64,000 bases of DNA from Eutreptiella sp. 'Long Island Sound 2002' (Eukaryota; Protista; Euglenida). How positions within the stretch are numbered: the stretch's first letter is position 1; the number at the start of each line of letters is the position of its first letter. Shown here one piece after another: positions 12,396-64,000 of the stretch. The translations under genes were made by a program, and so were the position numbers. The notes beneath the pieces were generated by a model that was given only the letters and a program-made list of their open reading frames with translations, was not told where the DNA came from and ran no database searches. The stretch covers positions 31,310,001-31,374,000 of the forward strand of contig OZ038379.1 of the NCBI GenBank assembly GCA_964036045.1, in the 5' to 3' direction.

Positions 12396-12457
12396 GCTCA
12401 AGGCGCTCGGGCGAAGGAAAAGGGAGATGCAGAAGCGCCAAAATAAGAGACAAGAGA

Positions 12458-12509: not shown

Positions 12510-12909
12510 TGAAATTTGGTGAAATTGGGTGAAAAAAAAATCCAAATGTGCCCTATCCCCAATGCGAAAGAAGCATCGCAGTACCCGTTTTCGAACAACA
12601 ACGGGTCCCCAACCCACGGACAAAAAATGGGGAAAGAGGGGGAGAACTGGCGGAAAATATGAGAAAACTTTGCCTGGTGCGTCTGGCGCGCTAACATACT
12701 CTCTATGTCCATGGGTAGGGTAACCCCCACTCACCCTTGTCCTAACACAGGCCAGGTTCAGTAAAACCGCGGAAACATGGGGTCGTCGTGGTAGAACAAA
12801 GGCATGTTAGGACAAGGTGGACGGGGGTATGTGGCTGTGATTCAGCAAGTCGGGGACAACAGTCTGCATAAGATGAAGACGGCATAACACAAGCCTTACA
12901 ACTGCAGAC

Positions 12910-13337
12910 CTTGCACGAAGGGCAAACCCATGAGCTTCAGCAAGCGTTTCGCGTCGTGTTCCCACTGGAATCGGATGGCTTGGGCACCTGGTTGACGTGA
13001 CTTTTCAACAGGAGCCTTGCCATCAAAGACGAAAACAGGAGTGACACCTGCACAATGCATGCATTTTTCCAAAATCACCAACGAGCACTAACAAACAAAA
13101 CAAACATCGATTGGGGCATTGCTCGCAAGTGCAGAAGGAGGCATAATGACAACAAGCACGGCATTCGCTCGTCACCAACCCTTGACCGCAAAAAGGCACA
13201 CCTTTCACACCAACCAATTCTCACAGCATACTTTATATCACAACATTTGCTCACTTTCAGCAGATCCTCTGCATCAGCAGAAAACGCCCGACACTCACCA
13301 CCTCTCCACTAGATTTTGGTTCATCTCCCTCAACAGA

Positions 13338-13369
<32 letters not shown>

Positions 13370-15499: not shown

Positions 15500-15680
15500 T
15501 TGACAACAATCGGGAGTGGGGGTTGGGGGGGGTACTCAGTGACGACAATGGGGGAGGACACTCAGTAACGACAATCAGCCAGGGAACTCAGTGGCAACAA
15601 TGACGAAGGGAACTTAGCAACAACAACAGGCGAGGGAACTCAAGGAAAGCAATCAGGGAGGGAACTCAGCCACAATAAAC
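15500..15680 (+). repeat. Degenerate ~25-bp minisatellite
   Basis: Recurring ggaactcag..r.caacaat.. units, about 6-7 copies. Confidence 0.7.
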
Positions 15681-39230: not shown

Positions 39231-42200
39231 ATGTGGAGCCTTGTGGTTCTATCTTGGTTGTTTTGCACGTACGGGGGTGAAACCACCCCGGCATCGAGCC
39301 CCGTCGTGCCTGGCGTGCCCCCGTTGCAGCGCTCCAATTACCAGGGCCCGCAATTTGAGTGTGATCGCTCGGCTCGTGTCATGCCCATCGAACATGTAAA
39401 CGATGACTACTGCGATTGTGCGGACGGTTCCGACGAGCCGGGCACCAGCGCGTGCAGCGGGAGTAGTACTCCGTTTTGGTGCGCCAATGTGGGGCACAAG
39501 GCAACCACCATCCCAAGCTCGCGCGTGCGTGACGGAATTTGCGACTGCTGCGACGGGTCCGATGAGGTTGGGAAGACTGGGGAAGGGCCGTGCCACGACG
39601 CTTGTGCAAAGGAGGCGCAAGAAGCGGCGCGACTTCGGGAGGAGAAGGCTGAGCGCATCCAAAGGGCAAAGGGCGCGCGACTGGAAGCTATGGCCATCGG
39701 GAGGGAGGCCCGTGCCCAGCGGCAAGCGCGAGTGGACCAACTAACACGCGAAATCGCGGAGCGCGAAACCACGCTAGAGACCGTTCTTGCCCAGAAGGAG
39801 CACGAGGAGGAGCTGGAGCGACACGAGCGCGCGCAGCAGCGGGACGAGGCCGCGCGGCAGTTTAGTATTGCCGTGCTTCCGCACTTGAACGCTCTGCCGC
39901 CGGACCATCTCCGGGATATCATTGTGTCGCTTTGCGCCAAAGACCCCTCTGTCGCAACCAAGTTGGCAACACAGGCATTGAAGGCGCCTTTGGACGGGCA
40001 AGTCACGCTCAATCATTCGGAAGTGGAGTCCATTGCCGGTGACTTGCACCACCTCCTGAAACCAGAGGACCGCGAGCCAGAGGAAGTGCACTACGATGAC
40101 GATGACGATGACGATGACGAAGATTCTGGAAGTTACGAGCACGACGACGACCACTATGACTCCGAATACCCCTCGGAATACGACCCAGAGTACGACTCCG
40201 AGTTTGCCTCCGAGTACGACCACGATTACGATGGTTCCGAGTACGACCAGTACAACCCCGAGCACAATCCTGACCACGAGTTTGTGCCAGAAGATGTGTT
40301 AGCTGGACCACGAGAACCGGTGAGCTTTCCCCATTCTCCCATTGAGCCCATTCATGGGATCGCTGAGTTAGCCATACGTTGAAGGAAAGTTTGTCCCCCG
40401 AAAGGATTGAAAGGACTGAAGCAAATGTTCGGTGCCAATTGAACGGCAATCAGAGACTGGATAACAGGTGGTGTGCTGGTGTTGAGACCGGCATTCTTCA
40501 GTCAACGGTGTGCAGAATGGTACCCGGGCTGCATTCAGATCCGTCCCGTGCTGCAGTCGCGTGTTTACGCCACATGGCTGTTTGCATGCCCTCCCAAAGG
40601 TACTGCGCTCAGGGTAGTCCGATCGCCACCGGAATTCAGAACAACCCAATCACCTACAGGCTGTCTGAACACCGCCCTGCTGGGGAAGGGGTCGTCACCG
40701 GACCGACTGATAGTTACACTGCAACGACACTGCACTACACCAACGGTTTCCTGCCTGCCCACCAAGGTCATAACCGATGGTGGCCTAACCTGATACCTGC
40801 ACCTGCACCAGTGCTGTGGGTGCAGTGGGCCCCGTTGCCTTCTTTCATGCCCTTCTGCATTTGGAGGATGGGCAATCACAGTACATCAAGGCCCCTATCC
40901 CCCGTTGCCGTCAGTGCATGGTATGCATAGCACGCATGGCCAGTTTGTGTGCAGAGGGGCAGGGGCCCATCAAGCTCTCTGCCTGGTCTGGTATGGCGGG
41001 TAACGGATGGCGGTTGGGGTACTGGTATGGCGGGGTAACAGATAGCGGTTGGGGGTAACCGACGGCAGTTGGGGGGTAACCGACGGGGATTGGAGGGTGA
41101 CTGTGCACATTCTATTTTGTAAGTGACATATATCCCATCCCACCCCTGCGGACGGCCGGGGATAGATGGCCAAGTGTTGACAGGCCCGCGGACGCATGGA
41201 CACACACTCCTTTTCACGAAGCGCCAGGCAAACGGATGGGTAGACAGACCAACAGACAGACGGATGGAAAGACAAAGTGATGATATTAATGATGGCGGGA
41301 TTTTGACAGACCTACAGCCCTGGGCTGGGCTGGGCTGGGATCCCCTTTTTTGCAAATGCTCCGAAGCTGATTCGATTTGCACGATTGTCTGCTTGGTTGC
41401 GTTGGGACACTCGCATCATCAAGTGCAGACGGGCTTGCGGCACCCGCATCATTTCTGCACATCAGGACCCTGTGGGTGAAGACGGGTGGATGGCCTGGGG
41501 CTGTGACGCGGTGGTCGTCACGCGGGCAGCGTGGATAACGACCAGTAAGACGGGCGAGACCGAACGGTCATGCAAGGCTTTGTGCCTTGAAAATGAGGAG
41601 TGTAACAGCATCAACTTCCGGGGAGACGTAGGAGAATGTGCGCTTTGGCACGCCCATGAACCCCGGCAGCCTGAGGTGACGCGTGAAGGGTACGCAGGGT
41701 GGTGCACGTGGTCCTTGCCACCCACTGACTTTGACGGATTTGACGAATTTGAGGAGGGCCATGTCGAGCACGGCCCCGATGGCGATGCAGAAGCTCGCGA
41801 CGGCAAAGATGAGGGCGGTCGTGCAGGTCTGGAACCCGAAGCCAACCCCGAAGGCAGCGATTTAAGGGCGGACGAGGAGGGAGCGCCCGCTCCCAGTGCG
41901 CCCGGCGACGGCCAGGACGACTCTGATGTGCCGCGCCACGAAGGGGACATGCCAGCCGGCGATGCGGCGGTGCCATTGGGGTCGGAATTGGAACGTCAGG
42001 CCACCGAAGGCAAGCAGCGGCTGGTGGAAGCGCTGCATTTGGAAAAGGTGTCGGGGGAGGAGCTTGCGCCCCTGGCGCTGGCGCTGGCACGCAACGCGTC
42101 CCGGTACGCTGCGCTCTTGCGGCTGATGGCGCAGGAGATCCCGGTGCAGGTTTCTTCCCTCTGTGGCCCTACGCTACTAGACCCTGTTGCCTACCTCCCC

Positions 42201-44591: not shown

Positions 44592-44791
44592 NNNNNNNNN
44601 NNNNNNNNNNNNNNNNNNNNNNNNNNNNNNNNNNNNNNNNNNNNNNNNNNNNNNNNNNNNNNNNNNNNNNNNNNNNNNNNNNNNNNNNNNNNNNNNNNNN
44701 NNNNNNNNNNNNNNNNNNNNNNNNNNNNNNNNNNNNNNNNNNNNNNNNNNNNNNNNNNNNNNNNNNNNNNNNNNNNNNNNNNNNNNNNNNN
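44592..44791. other. Assembly gap (200 N)
   Basis: Run of N characters. Confidence 1.
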
Positions 44792-45500: not shown

Positions 45501-48339
45501 TCCGCCCTCTTTTGCTGTTGATATGTTGGGCAGCATTATATGGATTTGCCCCTTGGCCCCCGGGACATCAGCTGATGTTTCTATTTGGGATGGGTATGGA
45601 CCTTCTCGTACCCGAGGTGATTTCTTTGATTTCCAAGTTGGGGGCCATGATGGTGCTTATAAGGGCCGGATTCATGTCATTGTGCCATTCATTGGAAGAA
45701 AGAATGGCACTTTGATAGCCCGCCAACAAACTTGCAATGACGTGCACGGGTGGTATAGGGCACGCATTGAGCAGCTGTTTGCTTGGTTGTGGCATTGGGG
45801 TTTGGTTAGGAACATCTAGGGCGGCGGCCCCAATGAGTTGCACCAGTCAGTCCGTATTTTGTTGCATTTTACGCAATTTTGCATTTGCAGGCAAGTCCGT
45901 CACCACCCCCCCCCCCCTCCCCTATGGACCATGGGACCATGTCCCGCCTCATGTTTGGACTGACCAAAGCAACTCGGCCGCCACGCAAGATGAGGCAGAG
46001 GATGAGGCACAAGTGTGTGTGTGTTGTGCTGTCAGAAGCGCTCCACCGTCACAGTTTGTGATGAGTGTAAGGAGCACTATTGTGCTGAATGTATTGACAC
46101 CCACAATTGTGGGAGCAATGTTGTTTGTTAAGTACAATACAAATGACAGTTGGAGTGGTTGACTTCACAGCTATTGCTTTATTATGCAACGTGCTTTGTA
46201 GGGAAGGTGTGCAATGCAACGTGGTCTACTCGGGGGCCTTATCCATGAGAGGGTAAATCTGGGGCTGAAGTGGGGATAGTTAATAGAAAAGTAGCGCGCC
46301 AGGCACGCACCGGGCAAACATTCCCCCAGAGGGATGAGGAAGGCATCCGATTCTGATGTACACAACACCACACACAACATGCAGCACAACGTTTTTAACT
46401 GCGGTGTTTCTCTGACCTGCACTCGGAACCTCCTGCCTTCCCCTGGCACCACGGGACACTGCCAAAGCATGCAGAGAACTTGCAAGCTTGCCTGCCATGC
46501 CATCAGCTGCCACACAGGCCACCTTGTCCGAGCATCATGTCTTCGGATCGGATCACGGGGATCTGTGAGTGATCAGTGCCCAGATTTGTGCCCTCACAGG
46601 TGCGTGCATGGCATTGCGCCTAGGTTTGAGCCTGAATAGAAGCAGCACGTCTTGTGAATGGGTGTGCATTGATTTGTGCATGGTGGCAGGGTGATCTGCA
46701 TGACCCTGGTTCACCACATGAGCGGCAGCCATCGCCTCACCGTGGCTGCCTGGGGCTCGCCGCGGTCCAATTTCTGCACAACACATGCACCATGGGCGCG
46801 TCCTGTCCAGTGCTCCCCCATACTGCCAAAACAATCAACAAGACTCTCTGTGCGTTTTCTACTTTCTTGCGCACTGTACCTGGGCGCCTACATTACCAAT
46901 TCATTTGAAAGTTTAATCTCCCAGCGCGCCAGCACGTCCAGAACCAGGTTTGAAGATGTGAAAGTGGTGCTCCAGAATTGAAACTGCATTACTGGGTTCT
47001 GCAATGGCCACATAGCCATCCCCGCTGGTGCCTCCACCGAGGGCCTCTTGGATACAGCATGTAATGCGGAGGGCATGGAAAGACACTAAGAAACAGCAAC
47101 TGCACACATGCTCAGCAGCTTGGCCATGCTAATGTGGAGTCAGGCAATATTGCATTGCAAAAAATTAGGAAGGTCCACATATCTACAAAACACAAGCACA
47201 ATGCAAAAAGCCATGCGAACCGTTTGGGGAGGTGGGTATGCATAGCAAATTTGTGCGGGTCTGAACCACAGCCTGGACTCTGTTGTGGTTCGGCTCTTTT
47301 CATGCATGGGACATGGGACCGTTTTCCAGTGAAATAGTCTGCACGCTGTGCAGGCACAGTGCAAAGTGACCCCCCCCCAGTGTGCTGTGGTGCCACGTCT
47401 GCTATGACACCCTGGCGAGCCTTGCTTTTTGCAGTAACGATAGGCCACCAAGTGTGACCCCGCTTCTCGTTGCATTTCACTGAGTGCAGATCGTACAAGA
47501 CCTGCCAGCACGTCTTGACACAGGTTTTCTGGGTTGCCATCATAGATACACCGCTTTCAAGGGTTCTTGTTGTAGTTGAAATGCAGGTGATATCCAGGAC
47601 ACAACAATAAGGCTTTTTTTTGCAAGTCCCTTCTAGTAGCCCCCCCCCCCCCTATGTCAATGGCCCGGGCTGTGTTTCTTCTTTCAAGAGGGGGGGGGGG
47701 CATTCACAAGGGGGTCCATGTTTTTTCTTTCGAAGGGGGGGGTCCATTTACATGCGCACGGGGGGATTGACTCGAATTCTCATCAAAAATCCAAAAAAAA
47801 CTCTTTGTGTACGCATTTTCTAGCATGTGCCATCCGTGTAAACGTGGTGGGGACCAATGCTTGGTACCTCTTGCATCTTTGTGGTGGTTGTGGAGCTCAC
47901 GTAGGCCACCTTTGTGCAAAATTTTCATGCTTTTACACAATTTTTCTTGTGGTGCTCGACATTTGTTTCCCATGCCTTTCCTTCTTCACACATACAAGCA
48001 CACAATAGCAAACATGAAGAACACACACAACTGCGACTTTTGAAACAATGATGGTTGAAACTGATGACCCCAGGCCTGCTTCAAAAAGTTTCAGCACCAT
48101 AGAGCAGGGGGGGGGGGGGGGGCATTGGCATGGGGGGTCCATTGGCATAGGGGGGGGGGGGGTACAAACGGGAACGGTGCTGGTGTAGAGTGTGCATCGA
48201 AAAGTGCAACTGAGTGGTATCCCCCGCACAAGCCAAGAAACAGAAGTTGGTAGGTGAAACAGAGGTATATGAGGCAGTTTTTCACACAAAGATGATGGCA
48301 GGTTGGGAGCACTGGAAACAAATCAGGCTCAAGAAAAAG

Positions 48340-48610
48340 AGTCCTTATGGAGCCATGGCCAACGCTTGTGCCACCATCATACGCCACCAAGGCACTGGTA
48401 TGGGGCCATTATAACATAGTTTCACATGGTGTCATTGGCAGTAGACACAAAATCAGGCCCAAGGAAAGAGTCCTTACACGGCCATGGCCAACATCCAATG
48501 TGCCAGCACTGGGAACAAAATTGGGCTCAAGAAAAACAGTCCTAATAGGGCCATGGCCAACACTAGTGCCACCACTATAGGCCACCAAGGCACTGGTATG
48601 GGGCCAATAT
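48340..48610 (+). repeat. Dispersed repeat with internal duplication; inverted partner at 51742-51837
   Basis: ggccatggccaac...gccaccaaggcactggtatggggcca occurs twice. 48411-48508 is the reverse complement of 51742-51837. Confidence 0.75.
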
Positions 48611-50243
48611 AATATCACGCTTATGTGCCCCACCATTGTTACACCATTTGGGCGCAGGGAAATTCGTCCCACAAAACATGCACCCGCCACAAGTAGTTGC
48701 GGAATGCACGCTTGTAGATCGAGTCCGTTTTTGTGTGCTGGACTTGGGCTTTGCACCAAGTTTGGGGTTAAATTGACAAGCGCCGCGCAACTCTGCTACT
48801 AGTTGCTTGGACAGGTCATTGATGAAAAGCCGTTCACACTCTAGACGGCCAGATGCATCTGTTGGGTAGCCATCCGGCACCTTGCGCCACTCTCCGCGGA
48901 TGAGGACCTTGGGACAGATGTCCTCCTTTTGGGAGTGGCCATGGAAAGTTGCGTCCTAGCCTCCGGGCTTTTGACGCTTTGCTTGGCGGAGGCCTCCTTG
49001 CCTTCGAGTGGGGTGGGGGTGGCCTGAACACTCTCCTTGATCGCCGAAAGTGCACCTTCAACTTGGGTGCTTGGGGGGGGGCGGGGGCTCAGGAGGGCAC
49101 GGAAGCTCGGTCACGCCCTCCACATCATCATTAGGCGCTTCAACGACCCACATAGTGTGATCAGCATTAACAATGCCGAGCACTTAGTCCACAAAACCGG
49201 GACCCATTGGGACAAGGGGCACAGCGAAAAAAGAACCTCGGTGATCCACCACCAGCTTTGGGATGTTCAAGCTTCCAAGGCCACAAGACCAACCGTGCTT
49301 TTGGAATCCCAAGGCGCGGTGCTTGGTGGTTAGCGAAAGCTTCTTCATGGCTGTCAAGAAAAAACGGATCAAATGAATGGAGCTTAGGGGTTCCCAAAAC
49401 CAAATAATGAAAAGCTCCAGCGGGACACGACAATCGAAGGCACACACAAACCAGTGCGCCCCTTGTTTGTCATCAGTATGAACCACAGAAATGTGGCGGC
49501 GGCACCAAGCCATGTTGTCCAGTGTTGTGCTGGGTTAAACTATCCGCATGCACTTGGATAGTCGTTTAATACATAGAACCGCTGGAGTCCACGCATGTGG
49601 TTCATCGATTTCCATGTGGCAGAGCTCTTGGTTCAGCCAACAAAAGATATCCGAGATATCCAAGATATATAAACTTTCCGAATGTATTTTGCGTAGCCCG
49701 CTTTACAAGGGGGTTGAGCGTCGCGACACCACACTGATGAGGAGCCCCCGGTGTCTTTGGTCATCAGTTTTTTCTTTTCCCACCTCTGCGGCTAGAAAAA
49801 TAAAGATCACTCGAGACGGAGTAGCCATCGCTTGGCCAAAGAAAATTATTGTGCTGTGTTACCGGGTGGCGGGTGGTGTGGCATCACAATCACACCCAAA
49901 ATTTGCTTCGCAGCAAACGTTGCCACCCGTACCCCACACTAGGGTATGTGGGGGGGGGCGGGATACAAGGTTGCGGCCAACAGCCCCCACTAGCATTTTT
50001 GCACCCGGGCTTGCTCAGCTGTGCTTCCGAACATACAGAAATACAACACTTACATGCCCATAACCAAAACAGCTGTCTTGGGTCAACCCCCAATATATAC
50101 ACCAAAACTGCATGTAGTGCTCCCTTCAATTTCCACATTTGAATCCCTTCCATGTACGTTGATGGTTGTGGGCGCGCCTTGGGGGTTGGGGTCTTGGGGG
50201 CAAACATAGTTGAAAATGATAAAAATCAATCCAAAGTGCGACA

Positions 50244-51295
50244 AAATCAGAAGTGGCCCACAAGTGGGCCAAGCGGCTAGATAACACCTCCCGCCTCGGC
50301 GTTCCCCAACGGTTCAGAGCGGGGAACACACTCAGCAGTGGCTCACAAGTGGGCCGGATGGCTACATAACCCCGCAACCATGGGGGTCCCCAACACTTCA
50401 GAGCGGAAGACCCAATCAGCAGTGGCCCACAAGTGGGCCGGGTGGCTACATAACACTTGCCGCCTCGGGGGTCCCCAACGCTTTAGAGCGGGGGACAAAA
50501 TCATAAGCGGCCCACAAGTGGGCCGGGTGGCTACATAACCCCTGCCGCCTCACGGGTCCCCAACGCTTCAGAGGAGGGAATAGAATCAGCGGTGGCCCAC
50601 AAGTGGGCCGGGTGGCTACAGACACCCTACCGCCTGGGGGTCCCCACCGCTTCCGTGCGGGGGACAGACGCAGCAGTGGCCCACAAGTGGGCCGGGTGGC
50701 TACAGAACCCTTGCCGCTTGGGGGGTCCGAAACACTTCAGAGCGGGTGACAAAATCAGTGGGCTGGATGGCTACATAGCCCTTGCCACCTTGGGGGTCCC
50801 CAACGCTTTAGGGCGGGGGACACAATCAATAGTGGCCCATAAGTGGGCAGGGTGGCTACATAACCCGTGCAGCTTGGGGGGTCCCCAATGCCGGACAGCG
50901 GAAGACAGAATCAGCAGTGGCCCACAAATGGGCCGCTTGGCTACAAAACCCCTGCAGGCTGGGGGGGTCCCGAACGCTTTAGAGCGGGGGATGGATTTAG
51001 CAGTGGCCCACAAGTGGGCCGGTTGGTTACATAACCCCTGCCGCCCGGGGGAGCGGGGGGGGGGGGGAACTAAGGCTTCAGGGCGGGAGGTAGCCCACAA
51101 GTGGGCAAGGCGGCTACAGAACCCTTGCCGCCCGGGGGATCCCCAACACTTCAGAGCGGGCGACAGAATCAGCAGTGGCCCACAAGTGGGCCACGTGGCT
51201 ACACAATCCCTGCTGCTTGTGTGTGGGGGGGGGGGGGGGGGGCAACGCTTCACGGCGGGGGATAGAATCAACAGTGGCCCACAAGTGGGCCGGCA
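50244..51295 (+). repeat. Second, more diverged tandem array of the 86-bp satellite (~12 units of 83-86 bp)
   Basis: About 12 copies of the palindrome g(g)cccacaagtgggc, each followed by ggctac(a/t)taacccctgccgc.tcgggggtcccc. Same strand as array 1. Confidence 0.93.
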
Positions 51296-52079
51296 AAGAA
51301 CACTGCTGCCCCCTTTCCAATTTAGTCGGACTGGTTGGTGACGCAGAGAAAAGGACCAAGAAAGAAGGAATAACACAAGCAGGGTTACCGTGTGCTGGGG
51401 AGTGGCATTCCACAATTGTGGGGGAAAGAATTGAAAAGGGGACGATACCACAGGAGGGCCAACCTGCCATGGGTTGGTGAAAAAATAGTCACTGGCACGC
51501 AGCCGACACCATTGTCAAGTGTAAGGGTCAAGTGTCAAATGCCAAGTCTGTGGAGGGCGAAGTCCCTGTGGCTATTCTCCACCCACGCTGCCTCCAGCCC
51601 TCCACCAACTCCGTACTCCCATTGTACACTGATTCTCATCCACCCCCCAACACAAAAGACCTATTTCTTTTGTCCCCAATCCCATACCGCATCCCATGCC
51701 CGATTGCTTACTGTTGATACGCGATCTTTGAAGGCCCGTCTTGCTGCCACACTGGATGTTGGCCATGGCTCTGTTAGGACTCTTTTCTTGGGATTATTTG
51801 TGTCTAGTGCCAATGACACCATGTGAAACTATGTTATATTGGCTAAGTCCCAACCATTTGGTGCCCACACGGAGTACTAGGTGCACTGTGGACCCGGTGT
51901 CCCGGGACACCGTTAAGGTCGCTATGGGGTGCCGTATGGAACCGGCAGCTGTACATATTGCGCATGTATTGCAAAGGTTGCATTTCTTTCAATTTTTTTT
52001 AAATATTTTTCATAACTTAGCCTAAAAAACAATTACACGTGTTGACCGCAACAAAAAATTCAAGTTTTTTATAACCCGC

Positions 52080-52390
52080 GCAACTTACCGCAAAAAAAAA
52101 ACAACAACACACATTTACCGCAAAAAAAATTACACCACTCCACGATTTTTTTGTACATGAGTTACATTTTTAGCTGCAAGAACCCCGTCTAGCCTCCTGT
52201 TCCCAGAGTCCGGGGTGTCCAGGTGAAAAGGGAGGAGGATGGAAGGCAGTCTGATAAGTGTATGTTGTAATTCGTCTCATTTTGTTTTACGGGAAATGCG
52301 TGTAACAAAAAAATCGTCTAGCCGTATAATTTTTTTTGCGGTAAGTCGTGTAAACCCGTCACACGCATTACCGCAAAAAAAAATTACATG
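52080..52390. repeat. AT-rich block with repeated taccgcaaaaaaaa(a)ttaca motifs in both orientations
   Basis: Direct copies near 52086, 52115 and 52368; inverted copy near 52327. Confidence 0.6.
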
Positions 52391-55300
52391 ACTAGACAAT
52401 TTTTTTGTACACGCGGGCACGTCTAGGCAGGGTGTGGTTCGGAATGAGCGCCAACCCTCGGGGGCAGCCAGACCGGAGGTGGTGAACCCCGCTCCGCCGG
52501 GGCACGTGCTGCAACTCGTCTGGGAGCCTCTCCCGGAAGATGACGAGCGGGAGGCGGCCAAGCTCCCGGATGTGGACCCCGCGCCGCTGGACCCCCTGCC
52601 GTCCACGTTCCAGGCCGTCTGCGTCCTGGACCCGGAAGTTTTGGCGGACGCCAACTTGCGCTGGCTCCATGTGGGTTCTTTCGGCAAGGACCATGCCTAG
52701 CGGCACCTCAAGCCGCTAATGGGGGCGGCCTTGCCTCACCCCCCGCCCATGCGGGTGGTGGTCAGAGGGTCGAAGGTTGAGGTCTCTGCGGACCTCGCTA
52801 AAGAGGTGGCGCTGCTGGTTATTCGTGCCAGTGCCACAGGCCGGGGAGTCCACTTCCGGCCGTGGATAGTCACGGGCTCCACCTGCCACCATCCCGCGTA
52901 TGTGTTGTGGTACAAGCAGCCGCCGGAGCGCCGCGGGCCCTCCCCGGAGGTATGGAAGACCCTCGCCGAGGATCAAGAGCTCCAGGTGCTGTTCGCGGGG
53001 CTTGTGGACGGGGGTGCCCCTGGCAACGTGTGGGGGCACAGATCTGGGGAACCAAGCTGGCGAGCCACGCGGTTGTGGCGCACATCGCCAGCCTGTTGGG
53101 TGCGCCGGCCCCGTCACGGACGCCCTCTGTGCGGGTCCACGGCTACCTGGCACAACTGGGTTTGGCTGCGGATCCGTATGCGCAGCTCCGGTGCTACGCC
53201 AAAGAGGCCTTTGGGTCAGAGGTGAACGTCCGCGTCCACCGCTGCACCCAGGTGGCCCACAGCACCCTCAACCGGCCGGTCTTTGACCCCGAGCTAGAGG
53301 GGGTGCCTGAGGACTGGCAGGGAGTCCGGCTGGGCGCGCCCGATACCCGCCTCCCCGACCGCCTCTGGCAGTGCACAACCCGCAGCTCCTGCCGCGGGCA
53401 CTACCAGGAGGGTGTCTGTGCGCCCAAAGCCCACGAGGGCGCCCCGGGGTGAGGCGATGGCCCTGTGTCCCCACCGGTCGGGGGGGGGGGGTTGCCCGGG
53501 CGGTGGCAGGGGGCCCCATGCCCAAGTGGGGCGGTGGCGGTATGGCAGGGGGCATAGCCGCCGCGGCACTCCGGCTGCCCCTCGCACCGAGCGTGACTGG
53601 GAACGTGCCAAGGGGCTCCTCCCCTCTCCCCCCCCCTCCCCCTTGGTGGGATAGTGTTAGCAGGCCAGGTAGTCAGCGAGCGCCGCCTAACCGGGAAGCC
53701 ACTAGGGTGGCATGCGCAACGTCTGTGGGCGGTAGCTTGCCCGCGGGGGCCGACGGCAGCGCCGGCGGCGCCTAGGCACGAGGACGTGGAGAGGGCGGCA
53801 CCACGAGCAAACTCCTTGGCGACCCGCCGGCTGCGCTCAAGGCTGGTGGTGGTGGTGGTGATGGCGGCGGTCCCGGCACCGGTGGATTTCCCCATTGGAT
53901 GGGCTCAGGAACCGGACCCTCCATGCGGCAGGAGGCTGTCTATACGCCCACAGCCCACGAGGGCGCCCTGCGGCGAGGTGGTGGCCCTGGGTCCCTCTCG
54001 GGCGGGGGATCACACCCGGGTGGTGGTAGGTGGCCCAAGTTCAGGGTGGGGAAGTGGCGGGATGGCACGGGACCCAGCCGCCGTAGCGCTGCGGCTGTCC
54101 TTCGCGCTAGGCGTCGCCAGGGGGGTGTCAGGGACCCCCCCTTGCCTAGGAACGGTAGTGGCCGCAGTCCGGGCCAACGGTGTGCACCACCTAACCAGGG
54201 AATGGCAGGGAGGGAGCATGGGGCAGCTGGGCGCAACCCCCCCCCCCCCCCACCATCCCCCCACCCCCTTGCCCCCTGCGCTAGCCGCCCTGCGGCGTGC
54301 CACCAGTTTCTTTTGCCCATGGCACAAGGACCACGTGGTCGGGGCTAAGGGTGAGGGCGCGGGCACCCCGGCCTGCCCCCCCCACTCCCCTGGAACCGGC
54401 GGCGGCACCACAGCCTCGCCCTGCTGCGGTGGTGGTACGGCCAGGCTGCCCGGGTGTTCCCCGCCCGCCATTAGCGAATAGGGTGGGCCAGCACCACTTG
54501 TGCCCTTGCCCCCCTCGAAGGGCTGTGCCCTGGGGTCCTGCGCCTCCGGGACCTCCTCGCCGGGGCGTGGAATGGGTGGTGGCACACCCACCACCAGCGT
54601 GCGGACGGCCCCGTCTAGTTATCCGCCTTCCACGGCCCCGGTGGCCCCGAGTTTGGGACCAATGGGGCCACCGTCGGCCGGGCGCTGCAATGGAGGTACC
54701 CCTGCGCGCTCTTTGCGCGCTCCGGCCGCCCCGACGACCGGAGGGCCAGTCTCTTCGACACGTGGCCCTGGTACAAGGCGACACAGTTGTAGGAGGAGAC
54801 CGGCGCGTTGATGTGGTGGCCGACCCGCCATGGCCGGGTGGAGCATCAGGACCCCCCGACTGCTAGCACCTCCACCCACGCCGCCGCCTCACTATCTTCA
54901 AAGGAGACGGCCGCCGGCAGGCCCCACACCACGGTGGTGGACGGGTGGGGACGGGTGTGGCACAACGATCCTGCCCGCCAGTCACCCCCCCTCCAACCCC
55001 TACCCCTTGGCGAACTGGCGGGAGGTGGCCGCCGAGGTGCACGCCCACCTCCTCCGCCTCACCGACATCCGGTGGGCCGCCCTACCGGAGCTGGGAGAGG
55101 TCCGGGCCACCGTCCGGTGGCCAAACGACCTCCGCCGCGTTCCCCCCGGCCCCTATCGGGGCCTCTTGCACGAGGTTCCCAGAGAGGCCGATCGCCTCGC
55201 CGAGGGATGGGAGCACGGTCGCCCCCCGCGCACACCAGCTTCCCCCCTGCCGCCTGTCTCCGGTGGACCGCCGCCTCCTACCACGCAACCCCCCCCCCCC

Positions 55301-55580
55301 CCCCGCCTCCCTGCGCGCCCACCTTGGGCCAGTGACCTATGTCGCCTGCCTGGCCTCGGTGGAGCGGGGCCGTCCAGCCCAGGAGCAATAGCTGACGTGC
55401 AGGCATGCGATGTTGCCCTCCCTTTGACTCCTCCCCTCACGCCTCCTAAACGCCAGCATTGAGTTTGTGTGTGGGCCGGGTACTCCCCCCCCTTCCCCCC
55501 CTCCCCCCGCTGGGGTGACCGTGGCTCTGCCTCTTCCACCCCCTTGATGGGATGGCGATGGGACCCCCCCCCCCCTCCCA

Positions 55581-55619
55581 CTGCTGTGTGGCGGTGATGT
55601 GCACCCCCACCCAGGGCCG
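55581..55619 (+). other. 2A/StopGo-like peptide motif (LLCGGDVHPHPGP) immediately before APE, copy B
   Basis: ctg ctg tgt ggc ggt gat gtg cac ccc cac cca ggg ccg, then LRAAQAYVMSL (start of APE). Confidence 0.6.
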
Positions 55620-58600
55620 TTGCGCGCGGCACAAGCCTACGTCATGTCCCTGCGCATGCACTGGCACACGGTCGCTGAGTGGCAGGTGGACGTGGTTCTG
55701 CGCTCCGAGACCCGTCTCACGGCAGTCGCGCAGCCAGTGATGCGCGCCCAGGCCGGGGCCTCGGGGTGGCAAGCTTTCTGGGGTGCCCCCCCGGAATCCG
55801 GGAGGGGCGGGGGGGCATGTGGGATGCGCCGGCCAGGGGGTGGGGATCATGGTGCGCTAGGGCATTCCCGTGAGACAGCTCCTTCCCCCCAAAGGGGCGC
55901 CCCGGGGCGAGGAAGACTCAGTCGCCCAGACCCTGTGGCACTCCACCCGATGGTGCCATGTTTTGGTGGGCTTGGGGCGGGGATCGGAGCCACTACATGC
56001 CCAGGCGGCCTACGGCGTCTCCTCGCAGCCGGTCCTCAACCTGGCCTTGTGGGACTAGGCCACGCAGTGAGTGGCGCGCCACGGGGTGGCCCCTTGGCCG
56101 GCGGGGGGGGGGGACCTAAACTTCGACCTCGAACGCCTACTGCGGGCCCCCCCATCCGTCCTGGCGTTCCTCCTGGTCCGCTGGCTGGTGGACGCAGACC
56201 TTGAAGTGGCGTCCGCCTTCGGGCGGCACCCCCTTTGCTCGTACCAGGGCCCGGAGGGTACGAGCCTCTCGCGCATTGATGGGCGCTGGTCGTCACACGG
56301 CGCTGCTCCACGCAGCGGAACTGCTCCCGCGCTGGGCCATCCCGGGCCACACCCCGGTGCGATCCGACTTGCACCTGAAGGGTGCATCTTAGCGGGTGGT
56401 GAAGTTCATCTGCCCCAAGCCCACTGAGTTGGCGCCACGGGAGGAACATGAGCGGCCCCTCCTCGTGCATCGCCTCGTGGAGCCCATGGAGGCCGGCTAG
56501 CGAGCGGCCCTATCCAGGAGTGGGATGGACCCGGCCTGGGCCTTTTGGACCATGACGGCAGAGGAAACCCTCCTCGTCCTCTCCTGCCTGGGCATTGCCC
56601 CGGACTCCCTTCCGGCGGAGGCCGCCTTGCCGCTTGCCCCGCCGCACCTGCCCCGGGGTAGGGGGACCGACCAGCTGCTTTGTGAGGTGTGCCTGTGCCC
56701 AAAGCAGCGCAGGGACACCGGGGGGCCGCTCACTTGCCCCGTGGTGCGCATCCAGGCGGCCCACGGCCCCCTCCGGGACGTCCTCCGCTTGCGGGAGCGA
56801 CCGGCTCACGGCGTGGGCACCAGCCGCGCAGGGTGCAGCAGGCGTGGGCAGCGCTCCGGCGCCGCCTCGAAAAACTCTGCGCACTCGGCCCGGAGTATGC
56901 CGGCCGGGAAACGGGCCGCACACATGACCGGCTGGCCCCGCTGGAGTCGCTGTGCCGCCTCCTTATGAGGGTGGCAGGCAAGGTTTGGGCCACGCTGTGC
57001 ACGGAGGACCAGAGCCTCCTGCGCGAATGGCGCGTCTAGCTGGAGGAGGTTTGGACTTCCGACTAGGGGGCAGTGTACCGGTGGCTCAAGGATGAGTCCT
57101 GCGCCCCGCCGGTCACCTTCCTCTCCAGGCCGACTTGGCGGAAATGGATGGCCTCCTACAGGACGCGTGGCAGCCAATAAACCGCCAAAAAAGACCCCGA
57201 CCCGGATCCCACAGTCTTCCTCCGCCGGTATGGGCACCATGTTTGGCGGGTCCCCATGATTGCCTCGCGGCTAGATGGCCCCCGCCTGCGCAAGAGACTC
57301 TCCCGCATGAACCCCTCGGCTCTGGGATTGCAGGTGGCCGACCTCCGCTCCCTCCCCAACATGCTGCTCGGTTGGCTGGCAGACCTCCTGTGGGAAGTGG
57401 AACGCGGTGGCCGGCCCGCCTGGCCGAGGGCTACACTGCCCTCATCCCCAAGGAGAGCCCGCCTGAACCCTTGAACACCCGCCCGCCCACGGTTGTGTCC
57501 ATGGTCTACAGGATGTGGGCGCATGTGCGCTTGGCGGACGCCATCGCGTGGCAGGAGTCTTGGGCCCACTCAGCGGCCTTTGGCTTCCGCCCGGCCAGGA
57601 GCGCCGTGGACGGGGCGGCGGTGACACACATCCTTTTGGAATTGTGTTGTCTCCGGGGGTGGGCGGTGGCAGGGATGAGTACCAACTGCGTCCAGTGTTT
57701 CAATCTCATCCCCCAAGCGGTCGTGGTGGCCCTGGCGTTGGAGCTGCGCATGGACTCGGGCACATGCCGTGCCCTCAAGGCCATGTACAAGCATCTCCGC
57801 CGGGCCTTCAAGGTCGCCGGGGCCCTTGGCCAATGGTGGCAAGCCACCACTGGCATCCTCCAGGGCTGTCCCCTGTCGGTGATCCTCGTGAATGTCCTCA
57901 CCACAATCTAGAAGTGGGAGGTGGACTCCCTACGCCGACAGGTGTGCTCGCGGACAGCTGCCCTCCCCCCCACTCTTGACGAGGACGCGGTGGCCGACCT
58001 GGAGGCGGGGGCCCAACTCCCCCTCAAGGACGCGGGTCCGGGCTACGCCGCGTTAGGGTCGTCGGGCTATGCGGACGACACCCAAGCGGTGGCCCTAGGC
58101 GCGGCCTCCCTGCAAGGGACGGTCCCCATGACGGCGGAGGTCACGGGTCAAGTTGTGCGCGTGGACAAGTCTTGCTCGTGGGTCGAGGGGGAAGAGGGCC
58201 CCCCAGCGGTCCTCCTCCGGGGTGTCCCAATCCCGCTGGCGGAAACTTTCCGCCAACTTGGCGTGGACGTCGCCATTGGGGGCTCCAGGATAACAGGGCC
58301 GGTGCTTTCCCGGCGCTTGGAGGCGGGCCGGAGTGCCCTCCGCCGCCTCCCCCATCTCTCCACCTACGACCGCCGGGAACGGGCCATCAGCACGCTGGTC
58401 ACCCCTCTGGCACTCCATGGAGTGGCCGTCGCGTTGGTGAAGGACTCCAACTTGCGGGGACTGGAGACTGCAGTTGTGCTGGCCCTGTGGGGAGCTACGT
58501 GTCTGTCCCGGGCCAAGGAGATTGTCTTCTCGGTTCGTTTCCAAGGGACACAACATCTCCCCGGTGATGCACACACGGTGCGAACGGCTACTGTGGTTGG

Positions 58601-60915
58601 CCCATGTGGCCCGGAGACTGGGGGTCACCCAGGTTTTCACCTAGGCCATCTGGGAGTCGGGCGGCCACCCGCCTCGGGCGGACACCCACCCTGGACGGGG
58701 ACGGTGGGGCGTGTGCTCCAAACGGCGGTTACCCTGGGGTGGAGCCCACACGAGGGCTAGTGGTGCTGGGACGTCCTGGGGCAAGAGTACCAGCTGCACT
58801 TTGTGCAGGAGCCCCTCCACCAGGTGCAACACCGGGTGCGGGACAGCCTTCGCTGCCATTCCTCACGCCAGCTGGAGGTGCGGCGCCCGGTCACCTTTGG
58901 GGGGATGGGCGACAGGGCAGATGGCTGACCTGCCGCGCGGTCATCGCGTTGCCTCCACGGAGCTGGAGAAGTTGCTGCTGCACGGCCTCATGCTGGAGCC
59001 TTGTGGGCGGCAGTGAGGGTGTCGGGCCACGGCACGCGGACCAACTCCGCGTGCCCCCAGTGCGGGGTGGCGCACGAGGACGAGGTCCACGTCCTATGGG
59101 ACTGCCCGGAGTGGGAGTAGGACAGGGAGACATGGCGTCCCTGGCTGCGTGACGCGGCGGCGGCCATCCCCCAGCTTGGGCCGCCAGACTAGTGGCCGGC
59201 CTGCTTGCCGAGGGCGGGCCTCTCCCCCCTCCGACTGGCGCGGGGGGTGGAGCGGGAACTTCTTGACGAGTTCCTGCACCGCCTGTACGGCATGTACCTG
59301 GCGGTCTTCGCCGCCCGCATGGCCGCGAGCCGCGGGGACCAGGCAGGCCACACGGACTCCGTGTTCTCGGACCAGCCGCGGCCGCGGCCCCGCAACCCTT
59401 TCCTCTGGGACGACTTCGTCAGCCCCCTCCCGGGGGATGCAATCCGCAACTAGCCGAGCCTTTGGCCGGGGTCCCTGCCGGGCTGGCGGTCGCCCCAGGA
59501 CTTCGTCTAGGACTTGGTGAGGTGGGCAAGGGCGCTGGCCTGGATGCTGGGGCCAGCGAAAGTATCCTGGGCTGGGCTAGCCCTGGACTACGAGGCCTTT
59601 GCGGGGCGGGCGCTCCCAGCCTTCCCGGATCACCCTCTGCTGGGTACGCGCCTGCCGCTCGCCCAAATCCTGCGCAAGGCGGCAGGGCTGGTCGAGCACC
59701 ACCTAGTGGCGGACACACTATGCGGGGCCCCCCTCGGGCTTTCTCGCTCCCTCCTCCCCCTCGGAGGCCGCGTGTGCGCTGGTCTGTCGGCCCGTCCGTT
59801 TTTGCGGCATGCCACGATTCGATGCTGCAGCTTATGCACCCGGCGACACACTGCCGGGACACGTGGATCCGGCGCCTGCAAGCGCCGGCCCGCATGCGGC
59901 CGCCAGTAGGTGACCGTTTTCTCATGGACGACTACCCCCGCCCCCTCGAGGGGGGGCTACCGCTTCTGCCGTACGCCAGGAGGCCCCCGCGGGCGCCGCC
60001 CAAGAGCGTTCCGCTCGCGGCCCCGCAGCGCAGCCGCCCACCGGCAGCGGGCATTGGCACTCAGGGCGCGCTCTGCTTGGAGCATGGGGCACCATTGTGC
60101 CGCAGGTGCAGAAGCCTAGGCTGGGGCATCAGCCGCTGCTGCCGTCCCGGACACAAGGGGCACACCGACCCTGCGGCGGGCTCGCGTTGCCCGAAGGCCG
60201 CGCCTCGGGTCACACCGGGCCGCCAGGTGCTTGTGCCCCAGGACCGGCGCGCTGGGGCGGCGGCGCTGTCCTCCTGGCTCGCCTCCCAAGCCCTCCCAGT
60301 CTCGGCCCCCCCGGCCTCTCGCCGGTGCACGCCCCCCCCCCCCCCCAGACGCCGGGGGCTCGCGCTCCCTCTGCCCTGGGTCTTGAGGGCTCCAGACCCC
60401 CGAAACGCGCCAAACCCAACCTCCTTGCTGACCAAGGGAGGACAGTGAGTGTGGGACCAGCGCAACCGGGAGGTGGGGCAGCCAACCCGTTCTCCCCCCA
60501 ACAACTGCTGGAGGCAACTGCGGTCTGGCGCCAACAAGCGCCCATCCAGAGGTTGGCCTGCCAAGGGCGCCACCGCCGCCACAGGGCTCACCCCCAGCAC
60601 AGCAACCCCCCCCCCCCCGCCGGCGGCTGAGCCTCCGGCATCGCTCCCCGATGTTTTTGGCTGCATCTCGGCGGCCCAAAGTAGCCGCGCCGTACTGCGG
60701 CGTCGATCCCCACACTGGGGACGCAGGCGGCCGCAGCCGAAGGCCACCGGGTCCATCGCGGACATGCTCTGCGCGCCCCCTCCCCGCCCCGTACCCGGCG
60801 ACACGAGGGGGGCCCCCTCTGACCCCATGGCGAACGCGCCCCCCACGCCTTCGCCACCTCAGTGCACACTGCCGCAGCGGCGGCAGCATGGCAGGGCAAG
60901 CACAGAAGAGACTTA
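55620..60915 (+). pseudogene. Copy B ORF2: APE, RT, Zn finger and C-terminal extension
   Basis: VDVVLRSETRL, GGDLNF, RIDG, IPGHTPVRSDL; FGFRPARS, QCFNLIP, GILQGCPLS, GYADD (58068-58079); C-x2-C-x4-EDEVHVLWDC. Numerous TAG stops and frameshifts. Confidence 0.92.
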
Positions 60916-61061
60916 GTCCCCTCTGGCGCGTCCCTCGTGGCCGCCGTGCAGACCTAGGCGGGGGGCTTGTACAGGAGGCCACGGGCGCCTGAACTCCACT
61001 CGGCCCACCTCCCCGCCCCTCTGCCTCTGTATATATTCCAGTGGATGCTAAAAGACGAATG

Positions 61062-61732
61062 CCCTCTTTATGTGTTTTTCACCCTATTTGGGTGTTGGGT
61101 GGGGATGGGATGGGATGGGAATGTGTCCAACACCAGTATTGACGTGGCCTGAAGCGCTGCGCTTTGAGACCCTGTGGCTGACCTGTCAGAGCGGCGCAGG
61201 CTCCCCCGCGTTGGACTCGGTTGTAACAGGACACCGCTGACCCTGGGCGACCCAGGCGCAGTGAATCCCGACACACTCGTGTGGGGGGGGGGGGGGTCCC
61301 AATGGGGCCGGGGCACAACCTGCTTATGCAGTTTTGCAGCCTTGGCAGCTCAAAAATGGAAATTTCCAAAACTGATTTTTTTTGATATTATGACCATCCA
61401 CAATGATCAAATATCCTATGCAAAGCCTCTAGGGAAGGACACGGGCGCCTAAACTGGACTCGGCCCACCTCCCCGCCCCTCTGTCTCTGTACATAGACCA
61501 GTGGACGTTAATCGACGAATGCCCTCTTTATGTGTTTTTCACCCTATTTGGGTGTTTTGGGGTGAGAGGGGGATCCCAAAGGGGTTGGGGCACAACCTGC
61601 GCATGCAGTCTTCCAGCCTCGGCAGCTCAAAAATGGAAATTTCCAAAACTGATTTTTTTGATACTATGACCATCCACAATGATCAAATATCTGATATAAA
61701 GCATGTTTTAGCCCCTCTTTATGTGTTTTTCA
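61062..61732 (+). repeat. Tandem units of a ~190-bp-core repeat that serves as the LINE target
   Basis: ccctctttatgtgtttttca at 61062, 61522 and 61713. gggcacaacctgc..atgcagt..cagcct.ggcagctcaaaaatggaaatttccaaaactgatttttttgata.tatgaccatccacaatgatcaaatatc at ~61310-61415 and ~61588-61692. Confidence 0.9.
61427..61521 (+). mobile_element. ~95-bp 3'-terminal LINE fragment (severely 5'-truncated insertion)
   Basis: ggacacgggcgcctaaactggactcggcccacctccccgcccctc...ccagtggacgttaatcgacgaatg matches the 3' ends of A and B and is followed by the same 20-bp target. Confidence 0.85.
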
Positions 61733-61785
61733 GGCTTCTTGTTGTGAGCCTGCTCGAGGCGAAGCTGCACTAGCCGAGCCGCAAC
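61733..61785 (+). ncRNA. Minimal (P4-less) HDV-like self-cleaving ribozyme at the 5' end of element C
   Basis: P1 GGCUUC/GAAGCU with G1-U wobble; P2 GUUGUG/CGCAAC; P3 GCC/GGC; 7-nt L3 UGCUCGA (U..G reverse-wobble positions kept); 2-bp P1.1 GC/GC; J4/2 C-C-G-A. G1 is the first base after the 20-bp target. Confidence 0.72.
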
Positions 61786-61786
61786 C

Positions 61787-63919
61787 ATGTTTCTGTCGAG
61801 GGGGGCCTCCCAGGCTGCGGGGAGGGCTCCCCTTGGCGCTCTTGCTCCCCGGGAGCTACCCGAGAGGCACTGGCCCTCTCTGCCGCTAGCGGCGACGGCC
61901 GCGCCTGCCGCCCCGCCCTCACGCCGAGGCCGACAGCGCCGGAGCGAAGACCGGAGGAGACCGCTAGCGGGGGGCACAACGCGTCCCCTCGCAGCAGCGG
62001 TCGCAACAGCCATCGCGGCGACGGCTGTGGCGGCGAGCTCGTCGTCGATGCGTGCAGATTCGGGCGCAAGCGTGGAGCCGAGCGCGGCCCAGGTGGCGGC
62101 ATGGGCAGCGGCAGCGGCAGCCCGCGGCGCCTTTTACGACGAGTACGTTGACTTCTTCTACGCCGAGGACGACGAGGAGTGCCCGTTTTGCTGTGGGCAG
62201 CTGGGCAGCTGCTACTGCCACGCGGAGCCTCTCGAGGAGGACATTACCGTGGGGCAGTTTCTGGAGCGGTACGTTACTGCACCTGCAGTGCGGGCCGCCT
62301 CTGTGGCTGCCGTGGCCGCGGGTGTTGTCGCTGGCAGCCAGCCCGCTGCCTTGGCCTTGGACGCTGCTGACGGTCCAGTGGAGCAGATCGCCGAGAAGGC
62401 TGTGCAGACCCCCGTGGAGCGCGTGATCGAGAAGGTCGTGCAGGCCCAGTCAGTGCAGAAGATCGTCGAGCGCCGTGTCGACGTCCCTTTCGAGGTTAAG
62501 GTCCGCCCGGAGGTCCGCGTCCCGCACCCTGTCCAGAAGGTTGCGGAGCGCCCTGAGCCATACCCGGTTGACAAGGTCGCTGAGGTTCCTCAGCCATACC
62601 CTGTCCAGAAGGTCGTCGAGCACCCTATGGCTGCTCCCGGTACGGCCATCGCTGGCTCCCAGGCCTCTGCCTTGGCCTTGGACGCCGCTGAGAGCCGCAT
62701 TGACGGCGAGTACTTTGGTGCTCAACCTGTGGCCCCTGCTGATTGGGCCACACTGCAGGCCGACCCCCTGCAGCTGTGGGGGCCACCGGAGGCATCTTGG
62801 GCAGCTGCAGTCAGCGCGCTGCCAGCTAACCCCCTTGCCCTGACCCAACCATGTGGATTCCCTAGGGGGAGGGGGGTGGAGGAGGTCCTAACCAGCCCCC
62901 CCTCCCCCCCTAAGGATGATTTCCCGCCTTTTTCACTGCCGGACCTCGTGGGGGCAGTGGTACAGGCGGAGGCGGAGGTCCGCTTTTTAATACAGCAGCA
63001 CAGGGCTGCGTGGCTGGAGCTGGAGTCTTCAAAACTCCAATGCTGCCTGGAGGCGACGCCCCGGGGTCCGCCGAAGCCGCGAAGGGCCCCCGCCGCCCCC
63101 CTGCAGCCACCAGCGCTGCCATTGCTGCAGGGCACCGCAAGTTCATTGCTGGCAGGCCCCGTCGCCTACCTGCAGGATGTGGCGCTCAACGGCGGGGCGC
63201 TGCCCCAAGGAGATGCGGGCCCTCCGCAGAAGGGGCCCTCAGGCCTACCTCCTCACCCTACCCCTAACCTTGTCTCAGGGCAGGGCAGGGCAGAGAGCTG
63301 GGAGGGGGCAGGGTTTGGGAACCCCCCTCCCTCCCCTCCCCTCAAGAAGACGGCGGGGGCTGGTTTTAACGGCTCCCTGCTGGCTGCAGGGTGCCCCAAT
63401 GGCGGGGCGTCCCGTTGGCTGCCCCCCCCCCCTATGGCGGCGGTGGGGGAAGACCACAACTTCCCCGTGCCGGATAGGCAGGCGCGTGCAGCGGCACAGT
63501 GCTGGGAGCCAAGGGCCTCCACAGGGCTGCCACAGGGGGCCAGCAGGTCGAGGCGGGGCAGGGCCAGGGCCAGGGCACCGGGCGACAGCGATGGGGGCCC
63601 ACGGGGCTTCACGGGAAGCAAAGGCGATGGGGGGTCCTGTCACAGGCTCCCGCTGACGGGAGCGCCCCCCGGGGCGATGGGAACCCCACCCCACAGATGG
63701 TCAGGGATCCAGCGGGTCAGGGCAGGGCATGGCTCGGGACAGGGCTCAGAAGGCAGGTGGAGGGGGCCCGTGGGGCTGCCCAGGGAGCAGAGGAGGAGGG
63801 GGTATGGCGGCGACCCCCCACTGACGGGAGCGTCCTCCGGGGCGCCGGGTAACCCGTCCCGTAAGGGCCCAGCACCGCCCCGGCGGCTGCACGGACGGGC
63901 GAGCTGGGAAGTGACTTAG
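61787..63919 (+). CDS. 710-aa ORF1-like protein of element C containing an articulin-like VPV-repeat block
   Basis: Uninterrupted ORF with ATG 2 nt after the ribozyme P2. Acidic/Cys patch (YDEYVDFFYAEDDEECPFCCGQLGSCYCH). 62378-62626 encodes VERVIEKVV...IVERRVDVPFEV.VRPEVRVPHPVQKVAERPEPYPVDKVAEVPQPYPVQKVVEHP. Confidence 0.7.
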   Translation: MFLSRGASQAAGRAPLGALAPRELPERHWPSLPLAATAAPAAPPSRRGRQRRSEDRRRPLAGGTTRPLAAAVATAIAATAVAASSSSMRADSGASVEPSAAQVAAWAAAAAARGAFYDEYVDFFYAEDDEECPFCCGQLGSCYCHAEPLEEDITVGQFLERYVTAPAVRAASVAAVAAGVVAGSQPAALALDAADGPVEQIAEKAVQTPVERVIEKVVQAQSVQKIVERRVDVPFEVKVRPEVRVPHPVQKVAERPEPYPVDKVAEVPQPYPVQKVVEHPMAAPGTAIAGSQASALALDAAESRIDGEYFGAQPVAPADWATLQADPLQLWGPPEASWAAAVSALPANPLALTQPCGFPRGRGVEEVLTSPPSPPKDDFPPFSLPDLVGAVVQAEAEVRFLIQQHRAAWLELESSKLQCCLEATPRGPPKPRRAPAAPLQPPALPLLQGTASSLLAGPVAYLQDVALNGGALPQGDAGPPQKGPSGLPPHPTPNLVSGQGRAESWEGAGFGNPPPSPPLKKTAGAGFNGSLLAAGCPNGGASRWLPPPPMAAVGEDHNFPVPDRQARAAAQCWEPRASTGLPQGASRSRRGRARARAPGDSDGGPRGFTGSKGDGGSCHRLPLTGAPPGAMGTPPHRWSGIQRVRAGHGSGQGSEGRWRGPVGLPREQRRRGYGGDPPLTGASSGAPGNPSRKGPAPPRRLHGRASWEVT

Positions 63920-64000
63920 TCATGACCAGCTCGTCCCTCTGTTCCGCCGTGCACCACAGGCGGGGGGCATTCAGCCCGGGGGGAGGGCGCAGAACTCTGA

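Follow-up and report, generated by a model that had tools for sequence, protein, structure and literature searches.

The window, by which we mean the whole 64,000-nt stretch of Eutreptiella DNA that was analyzed, contains two long copies of one LINE family (A and B), a short tail fragment of this family, a smaller element (C), and units of a satellite. LINE A (2867 to 12509, minus strand) was delimited by self-comparison and end-matching. It is full length (9.64 kb) and degenerate, with an AP-endonuclease-like region at about element nt 4180 to 5180 and a reverse transcriptase (RT) at about 5480 to 7860. A 20-bp target-site duplication flanks it in non-satellite DNA: read on the minus strand, the 3' copy, CCCAGTTTCACCAAATTTCA (2847 to 2866), is 19/20 identical to the 5' copy, CCCAATTTCACCAAATTTCA (12510 to 12529), which was located by end-matching. 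One segment of A (3782 to 4643) runs in the opposite orientation to its counterpart in B and in the copies of four other loci (L002, L003, L007, and L009), and other internal inversions are present in the L002 and L007 copies. These inversions are either genuine rearrangements or errors of assembly within GC-rich repeats.

LINE B (52414 to 61061, plus strand; self-comparison) is about 82% identical to A and is 5'-truncated at about nt 1299 of A, so that the first 1.3 kb or so is missing. The RT motifs LIPK, RPxT, GFRPxRS, GILQGCPLS, and YADD fall within 57096 to 58757 and share one reading frame, which is interrupted by a single stop. The upstream flank of B is not satellite, and given this flank the locus has been rearranged or has lost target DNA. 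The stretch directly upstream, where satellite would be expected (52040 to 52413), is AT-rich and rich in inverted repeats, and may be a later insertion or rearrangement. Two mutually inverted copies of a sequence of about 620 nt (88% identical; 48308 to 48927 versus 12946 to 13566 of locus L010) also bracket the cluster from B to C and lie about 16 kb apart.

The window has several further features. Tandem arrays of an 85- to 86-bp unit occur at 1191 to 1964 and 50178 to 51293, outside the LINEs; they are 72 to 79% identical and have the same orientation. A host gene at 39231 to 40382 encodes a protein similar to the glucosidase II beta subunit (PRKCSH-like; E 4e-35), whose best named relatives are only about 39% identical, so that no near relative of the host has been sequenced. 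There is a scaffold gap of 200 N at 44592 to 44791, and contig ctg10676 of ENA assembly ERZ25074135 begins about 116 nt after it; the window therefore derives from a scaffolded form of that assembly.

A 20-mer at the element junctions

The 64-kb window contains exactly three copies of the 20-mer CCCTCTTTATGTGTTTTTCA, here called T: 61062 to 61081, 61522 to 61541, and 61713 to 61732, each an exact match on the plus strand. The expected count is 0.01, and none of 100 shuffled sequences reached three matches. The first copy directly follows the tail of LINE B, which ends ...gacgaatg at 61061. The second directly follows a 92-nt, 5'-truncated, tail-only LINE insertion (61430 to 61521, plus strand), identified by junction alignment and tail comparison, which also ends ...gacgaatg and belongs to a subfamily other than that of B. 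The third adjoins the 5' head of element C, which starts with ggcttcttgttg at 61733 (the head is also read ggcttcttgttgtga...), and comparison with L010 identifies it as the upstream copy of C's target-site duplication. The original prediction, that a single 20-mer abuts the 3' end of B, the fragment, and the 5' end of C, was correct in its coordinates and its description. It had read all three as LINE insertions at one base; this holds for B and the fragment, which meet T with their 3' ends, and needs amendment for C, which meets the third copy with its 5' end. A scan of metagenome contigs for T gave a single match, AT-rich, unrelated, and attributable to chance. Since A is flanked by its own 20-bp duplication in DNA that is not this repeat, T is the target-site duplication of the LINE family, more than a flank that the copies happen to share.

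Two satellite units separate the three junctions. Unit 1 (61082 to 61429, plus strand; self-comparison and junction alignment) lacks the last 9 nt or so of the unit and the T that would follow, and has an extra piece of 186 nt (61097 to 61282) at a poly-G tract. Most contigs of sequencing run X2 skip this piece (joints skip 61098 to 61304), which is itself repeated (depth about 7,000). Unit 2 (61542 to 61712, plus strand) is complete, as judged by junction alignment and monomer comparison. T and the next 15 nt are identical between the units (35/35), and the remainder is 87.5% identical. Because the units were collected by matching T, we set monomer conservation aside as evidence of constraint on T. 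Monomers measure 157 to 205 nt, mostly 189 to 200 nt, and form LINE-free arrays of at least 10 units in L009 (5723 to 7589) and at least 17 in L012 (656 to 4451). Most sites are unoccupied: about 33 of the 35 occasions on which a unit end meets T in the fetched loci are empty. In run X2, contig depth summed over satellite units is 100 to 1000 times that over the body of C, and the commonest loose ends listed at the borders of T are a unit end before it and a unit start after it, which therefore represent empty sites.

The original prediction also held that the target is no recognized RNA gene, and the searches agree. Rfam at the gathering threshold found no family anywhere in the window, ARAGORN found no tRNA, and a diplonemid spliced-leader exon motif had no match in the window. 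At low stringency (E of at most 10), Rfam matches between 60900 and 61900 were at chance level; the best, a miRNA model, lies inside C (E 0.23), and a weak C/D-snoRNA-like match in a satellite unit (E 6.4) was rejected as chance. We infer that the satellite serves the LINE system as a harmless landing place, or safe harbor.

Element C continues past the window. Locus L010, from ENA assembly ERZ25074135, matches the window without a difference over 12,214 nt before extending beyond its end, placing the 3' junction of C at window-equivalent 64065/64066 (L010 12279/12280). C is thus 2,333 bp long (61733 to 64000 in the window, plus strand), ends 65 nt past the window with ...aaaagcgcaaca, and directly abuts a fourth exact T, followed by another satellite unit. 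The element is complete and flanked by a perfect 20-bp duplication. Nearly its whole length is filled by an open reading frame of 710 aa (61787 to 63919), also recorded in that assembly, in which we found neither RT nor endonuclease, no Pfam family, and nothing resembling the 5' region of A or B; when C was compared with the window by tblastx, low-complexity noise was all that appeared. The likeness to the LINE is confined to the two ends: the first 53 nt are 79% identical to the 5' head of A, and the tail is homologous to that of A and B from 63889 (match 63889 to 63968). C had been predicted to be a LINE with a different ORF1. Having only head and tail in common with the LINE, and neither RT nor endonuclease, it is instead a nonautonomous partner.

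Copies of C have heads identical at 59 of 60 positions and bodies that are 82 to 86% identical. One pair is 98% identical, and C has therefore been mobile more recently; the A/B-family copies seen are all degenerate. One segment of C, the valine/proline-rich repeat region of its reading frame (62284 to 62779), is matched at about 95% by a 1,300-nt contig from runs X5 (RNA) and X6 (marked only as probably RNA) that matches no other part of C. The depth of this contig in X6 is 2,449, versus about 17 to 20 for the remainder of the element. The segment seems to be part of a highly expressed host gene that C captured.

Insertion sites in other loci

Further copies of the LINE and of C were fetched from the same assembly by means of RT fragments or relatives of the C reading frame, with their flanks ignored. 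This is a small sample, comprising 13 loci and about 230 kb of a single assembly. Within it, 8 of 10 independent 3' junctions lie at the identical satellite base. They are distributed over six contigs and three satellite subtypes, in which T begins CCCTCTTTATG, CCGTATTTACG, or CCGTATTTTTG. These eight are the junctions of B, the fragment, and C (window and L010); LINE tails at L002 9974 (minus strand), L003 13692, and L009 17385 (minus strand); and C copies at L012 6805 and L013 8072. The two junctions in non-satellite DNA are those of LINE A and of a LINE tail at L007 11875 (minus strand). With eight junctions at one position of a monomer of about 195 nt, chance is not a serious option. The original prediction of a sequence-specific LINE using this repeat is thus upheld, also by loci chosen without regard to flanks. 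Had most copies lain in unrelated sequence, the prediction would have fallen; in this sample, which is not genome-wide, most lie in the satellite. Targeting is strong and at the same time not absolute, given that A and the L007 copy sit in other DNA with a motif resembling T.

The C copies decide the matter: all three have perfect 20/20 duplications, and these differ between copies (CCCTCTTTATG..., CCCTCTTGATG..., and CCCTATTTACG...), each matching its local array, so each copy duplicated its own local target. In five cases the 5' junction falls exactly after T or its equivalent: C, the L012 and L013 copies, A, and a LINE at L009 1513 (minus strand) that is truncated at about nt 6008 of A. Upstream target DNA was lost in two 5'-truncated copies, one near L009 17800 and the other the window fragment, whose 5' junction lacks about 29 nt of target and has no duplication. 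Such a pattern is usual among site-specific LINEs, in which the first nick is fixed and the 5' join varies.

Could the window junctions descend from one insertion, multiplied by local tandem duplication or unequal crossing-over of a block of tail, T, and unit? The fragment differs from B by 16%, similar to the 12.5% that separates unit 1 from unit 2, and unit 1 is truncated where a duplication junction would fall. However, over its 92 nt the fragment is 84% identical to B, 87% to A, and 90% to the L003 and L009 copies, with which it shares subfamily-diagnostic bases. A tail nearer to distant copies than to its neighbor excludes a local duplication as its source, and the original prediction that the fragment is no duplicate of B's junction stands. 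The accompanying claim that it shares diagnostic bases with A rather than B was right for three sites; two others it has in common with B. C, moreover, is another element altogether, flanked by a perfect duplication of its own, and the same junction recurs on five other contigs and in three satellite subtypes. We give local duplication very little credence.

Nor is the satellite likely to be a passenger of the LINE, carried along by 3' transduction or derived from the element itself, such that adjacency would reflect co-mobilization. Read-through transcripts of a copy in an array would contain T and a unit, and LINE tails are always followed by T. This account is extremely improbable in view of the long LINE-free arrays in L009 and L012, the perfect 20-bp duplications of the local T variant on both sides of elements inside arrays, and the absence of any similarity found between the satellite unit and the LINE body. 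We conclude that the LINE system is real and sequence-specific, and that its target, a satellite monomer in a poorly studied lineage, is new. Repeated insertion at one base of a repeated target is a known strategy, of which the system is a new example.

The two non-satellite copies indicate what is recognized. The DNA around A's duplication is unrelated to the satellite. It is part of a different dispersed repeat, which contains a TTTCACCCA-like stretch with 10-bp periodicity, and the site has empty paralogues at L010 14240 to 14300 and 17100 to 17170. A's target reads CCCAGTTTCACCAAATTTCA then CCCA, and that of L007 reads CCCTATTTTCCCCCATTTCC then CCCT. Both match T at CC (positions 1 and 2), TTT (6 to 8), TTTC (16 to 19), and CCC(T/A) (21 to 24). 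The resulting motif, CCSNNTTT-N7-TTTCM/CCCW (the slash marks the junction), has three matches in the window against 0.01 expected, all directly 3' of a LINE tail, a count to be read with the knowledge that the motif was derived afterwards from the very sites on which it is counted. Satellite units are related by descent, and the motif thus draws on three independent target types: the satellite, A's repeat, and the L007 flank. Since two of ten copies lie outside the satellite, the specificity is, as far as target comparison can tell, for a sequence motif and not for the satellite as such. The satellite is by far the commonest carrier of the recognized sequence.

A weaker form of specificity would be a preference for a short nick site only (about TTTCA/CCC), comparable to the TTTT/AA site preferred by L1, with the satellite hit often through abundance. 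It would accommodate the insertions of A and L007 outside the satellite, the extreme abundance of the satellite, and the variability of T positions 9 to 15 between targets. Against it, all eight satellite insertions use one base of the monomer of about 195 nt, and no insertion was seen at a second TTTTTCACCCC stretch at monomer consensus positions 101 to 111. The non-satellite targets also share about 13 fixed positions over 24 nt, beyond the nick motif of a TTTCACCC-type site. We regard a short preference as unlikely, and favor recognition of the longer motif.

Enzymes and a proposed route of insertion

Pfam searches of the longest open stretches of A and B yielded almost nothing, these being spurious GC-rich frames; the true frames were found by tblastn with intact relatives. 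The RVT_1 match of B is weak (E 0.001, below the Pfam cut-off). A phmmer search found 1,989 relatives, of which the long ones carry RVT_1 above the cut-off. Named relatives come from the transcriptomes of Diplonema ambulator, D. japonicum, and Flectonema neradi, with D. papillatum at about 31% identity. Two intact relatives, P0012 and P0165, carry both Exo_endo_phos and RVT_1 domains, and A and B align through both regions. Specifically, A nt 4176 to 5182 and B nt 3162 to 4369 align to residues 44 to 427 of P0012 and 297 to 734 of P0165, spanning the Exo_endo_phos domains. These alignments mark the family as an AP-endonuclease-type LINE by domain prediction, in agreement with the original prediction. 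The endonuclease region is frameshifted in the window copies, and by sequence it had no match among solved structures. For the RT, the nearest PDB entry is human L1 ORF2p (E 1e-23), versus E 6e-12 for R2. No RNase H family was detected in the pieces of A and B or in P0012 and P0165; PF00075 is present in some more distant relatives. Tails of the A/B family all end ...GAATG without an A-run. Every A/B-family copy seen in the 13 loci of this one assembly is degenerate, and no active master was found among them.

We are confident that the best explanation is target-primed reverse transcription, by which AP-endonuclease LINEs (A, B, and the fragment), and C, integrate at a defined sequence. On the bottom strand, the nick would fall opposite the base that precedes CC(C/G), at position 1 of T; this putative nick, at GGG^YNAAAA (top strand ...TTTTAG/CCC...), would prime reverse transcription. 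The top-strand nick would lie exactly 20 bp downstream, between TTTC(A/C) and CCC(T/A), where the same half-site appears to recur two helical turns away. A 20-bp stagger of this kind would generate the exact 20-bp target-site duplication. The motif may be read by the endonuclease, possibly together with an N-terminal DNA-binding part. C is presumably mobilized in trans by the LINE through the common head and tail.

The 5' ends of full-length copies are precise at GGCYTCTTG. We infer that the elements are co-transcribed from the array and that G61733 is where the 5' end becomes fixed, an HDV-like ribozyme being perhaps responsible. The C head can be drawn as a nested double pseudoknot with 94.7% of cells paired and one compensatory pair, in a drawing that was derived from the sequence itself; no HDV-like Rfam family matched the C head. 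In run X6, which is marked in its record only as probably RNA, a contig of 944 nt has its end precisely at 61733. This contig end and the near-invariance of the C head fit co-transcription from the array and processing at the first base, and are not proof of them.

Related families and known target-specific LINEs

Other LINEs in the surveyed loci are related to the A/B family. L011 (about 6471 to 16911) holds a member of a related family with an intact ORF2 of 2,058 aa (P0165, in a cluster of 126 members); the element terminates in ...cccagaatg and is flanked on either side by (CA)n (6452 to 6470 and 16912 to 16945). This family may be microsatellite-specific and currently active. A second related family has 3' ends reading ...aaaaggcgaatg then CC (L004 14776, L005 20618, and L006 15867). 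The L005 and L006 copies have a common 25-nt flank, CCTCCTCTCTTC..ATACAT.CCTG, and diverge thereafter, which suggests another specific target.

Taken jointly, these observations allow a broader reading that we put forward only tentatively, and consider possible though doubtful: in this genome, AP-endonuclease LINEs outside the classical R1 and Tx1 clades would have undergone a lineage-specific radiation, each family with its own long target (T for A/B and C, CCTCCTCTCTTC... for the L005/L006 family, and (CA)n for the intact L011 family). The enzyme would read two short copies of a motif two helical turns apart and nick one strand at each, thereby fixing the 20-bp duplication. Diplonemid transposons are essentially undescribed. 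We found no description of diplonemid LINEs in the literature searched, and the authors of the D. papillatum genome paper, who list LINE-like genes, explicitly left the analysis of transposons for later (PMC10161547).

Within the R1 and Tx1 clades, AP-endonuclease LINEs with specific targets include R1, TRAS/SART, Tx1L, Kibi/Koshi, Dong, Mino, Keno, and Mutsu; they are reportedly reviewed by Fujiwara (2015), a work cited in PMC12278014. Like them, the present family is of the predicted AP-endonuclease type, uses one nucleotide of a repeated target, and makes a target-site duplication of fixed length. In its 5'-truncated copies the 3' junction is retained and the 5' junction is variable, and several related families apparently have different targets. 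Unlike theirs, its target is a satellite monomer of about 195 bp in a euglenozoan-like protist, rather than rDNA, telomere, snRNA gene, microsatellite, or DNA transposon. The duplication here is 20 bp, and the likeness is one of behavior; the nearest relatives are diplonemid elements.

The ingi and RIME elements insert at one position of RHS genes. More broadly, the INGI clade of trypanosomatids comprises ingi and L1Tc with their partners RIME, NARTc, and SIDER (PMC12278014). The resemblance to the present family lies in the Euglenozoa host, the combination of AP-endonuclease (here predicted) and RT, repeated insertion at one position of a multicopy sequence, short nonautonomous partners with the 5' and 3' ends of the autonomous element, and a conserved 5' leader, which in L1Tc is a ribozyme. 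In contrast to INGI, neither RNase H nor a poly(A) tail was seen here (ends are ...GAATG or ...GCAAYA), the duplication is 20 bp, and the partner C carries its own 710-aa reading frame. The parallel is one of organization, and not of demonstrated sequence relationship.

Genie 1 of Giardia inserts in a 771-bp tandem repeat. CRE-clade elements (SLACS, CZAR, and CRE1/2) occupy spliced-leader RNA gene arrays (PMC12278014). These too are site-specific LINEs in tandem arrays, at the same relative position of the unit. They differ in having a restriction-enzyme-like endonuclease, whereas the domain predicted here is AP-endonuclease-like, and unlike the CRE target the satellite matches no known RNA gene family.

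Sequence-specific LINEs are natural models for aiming a retrotransposon endonuclease at a long DNA site and starting points for site-directed insertion tools. The present system adds a new target class, a long-monomer satellite with an exact 20-bp stagger between two similar half-sites. The target variants that are tolerated already map the positions that matter, and the nonautonomous C would show which RNA ends suffice for mobilization. Within the genome, the LINE/satellite system explains part of the long repeat-region architecture between gene clusters. If the reading as a radiation is true, it would in addition provide a natural series of re-targeted endonucleases, along with nonautonomous passengers that carry reading frames and have a ribozyme-defined 5' end fed by transcription of the array.
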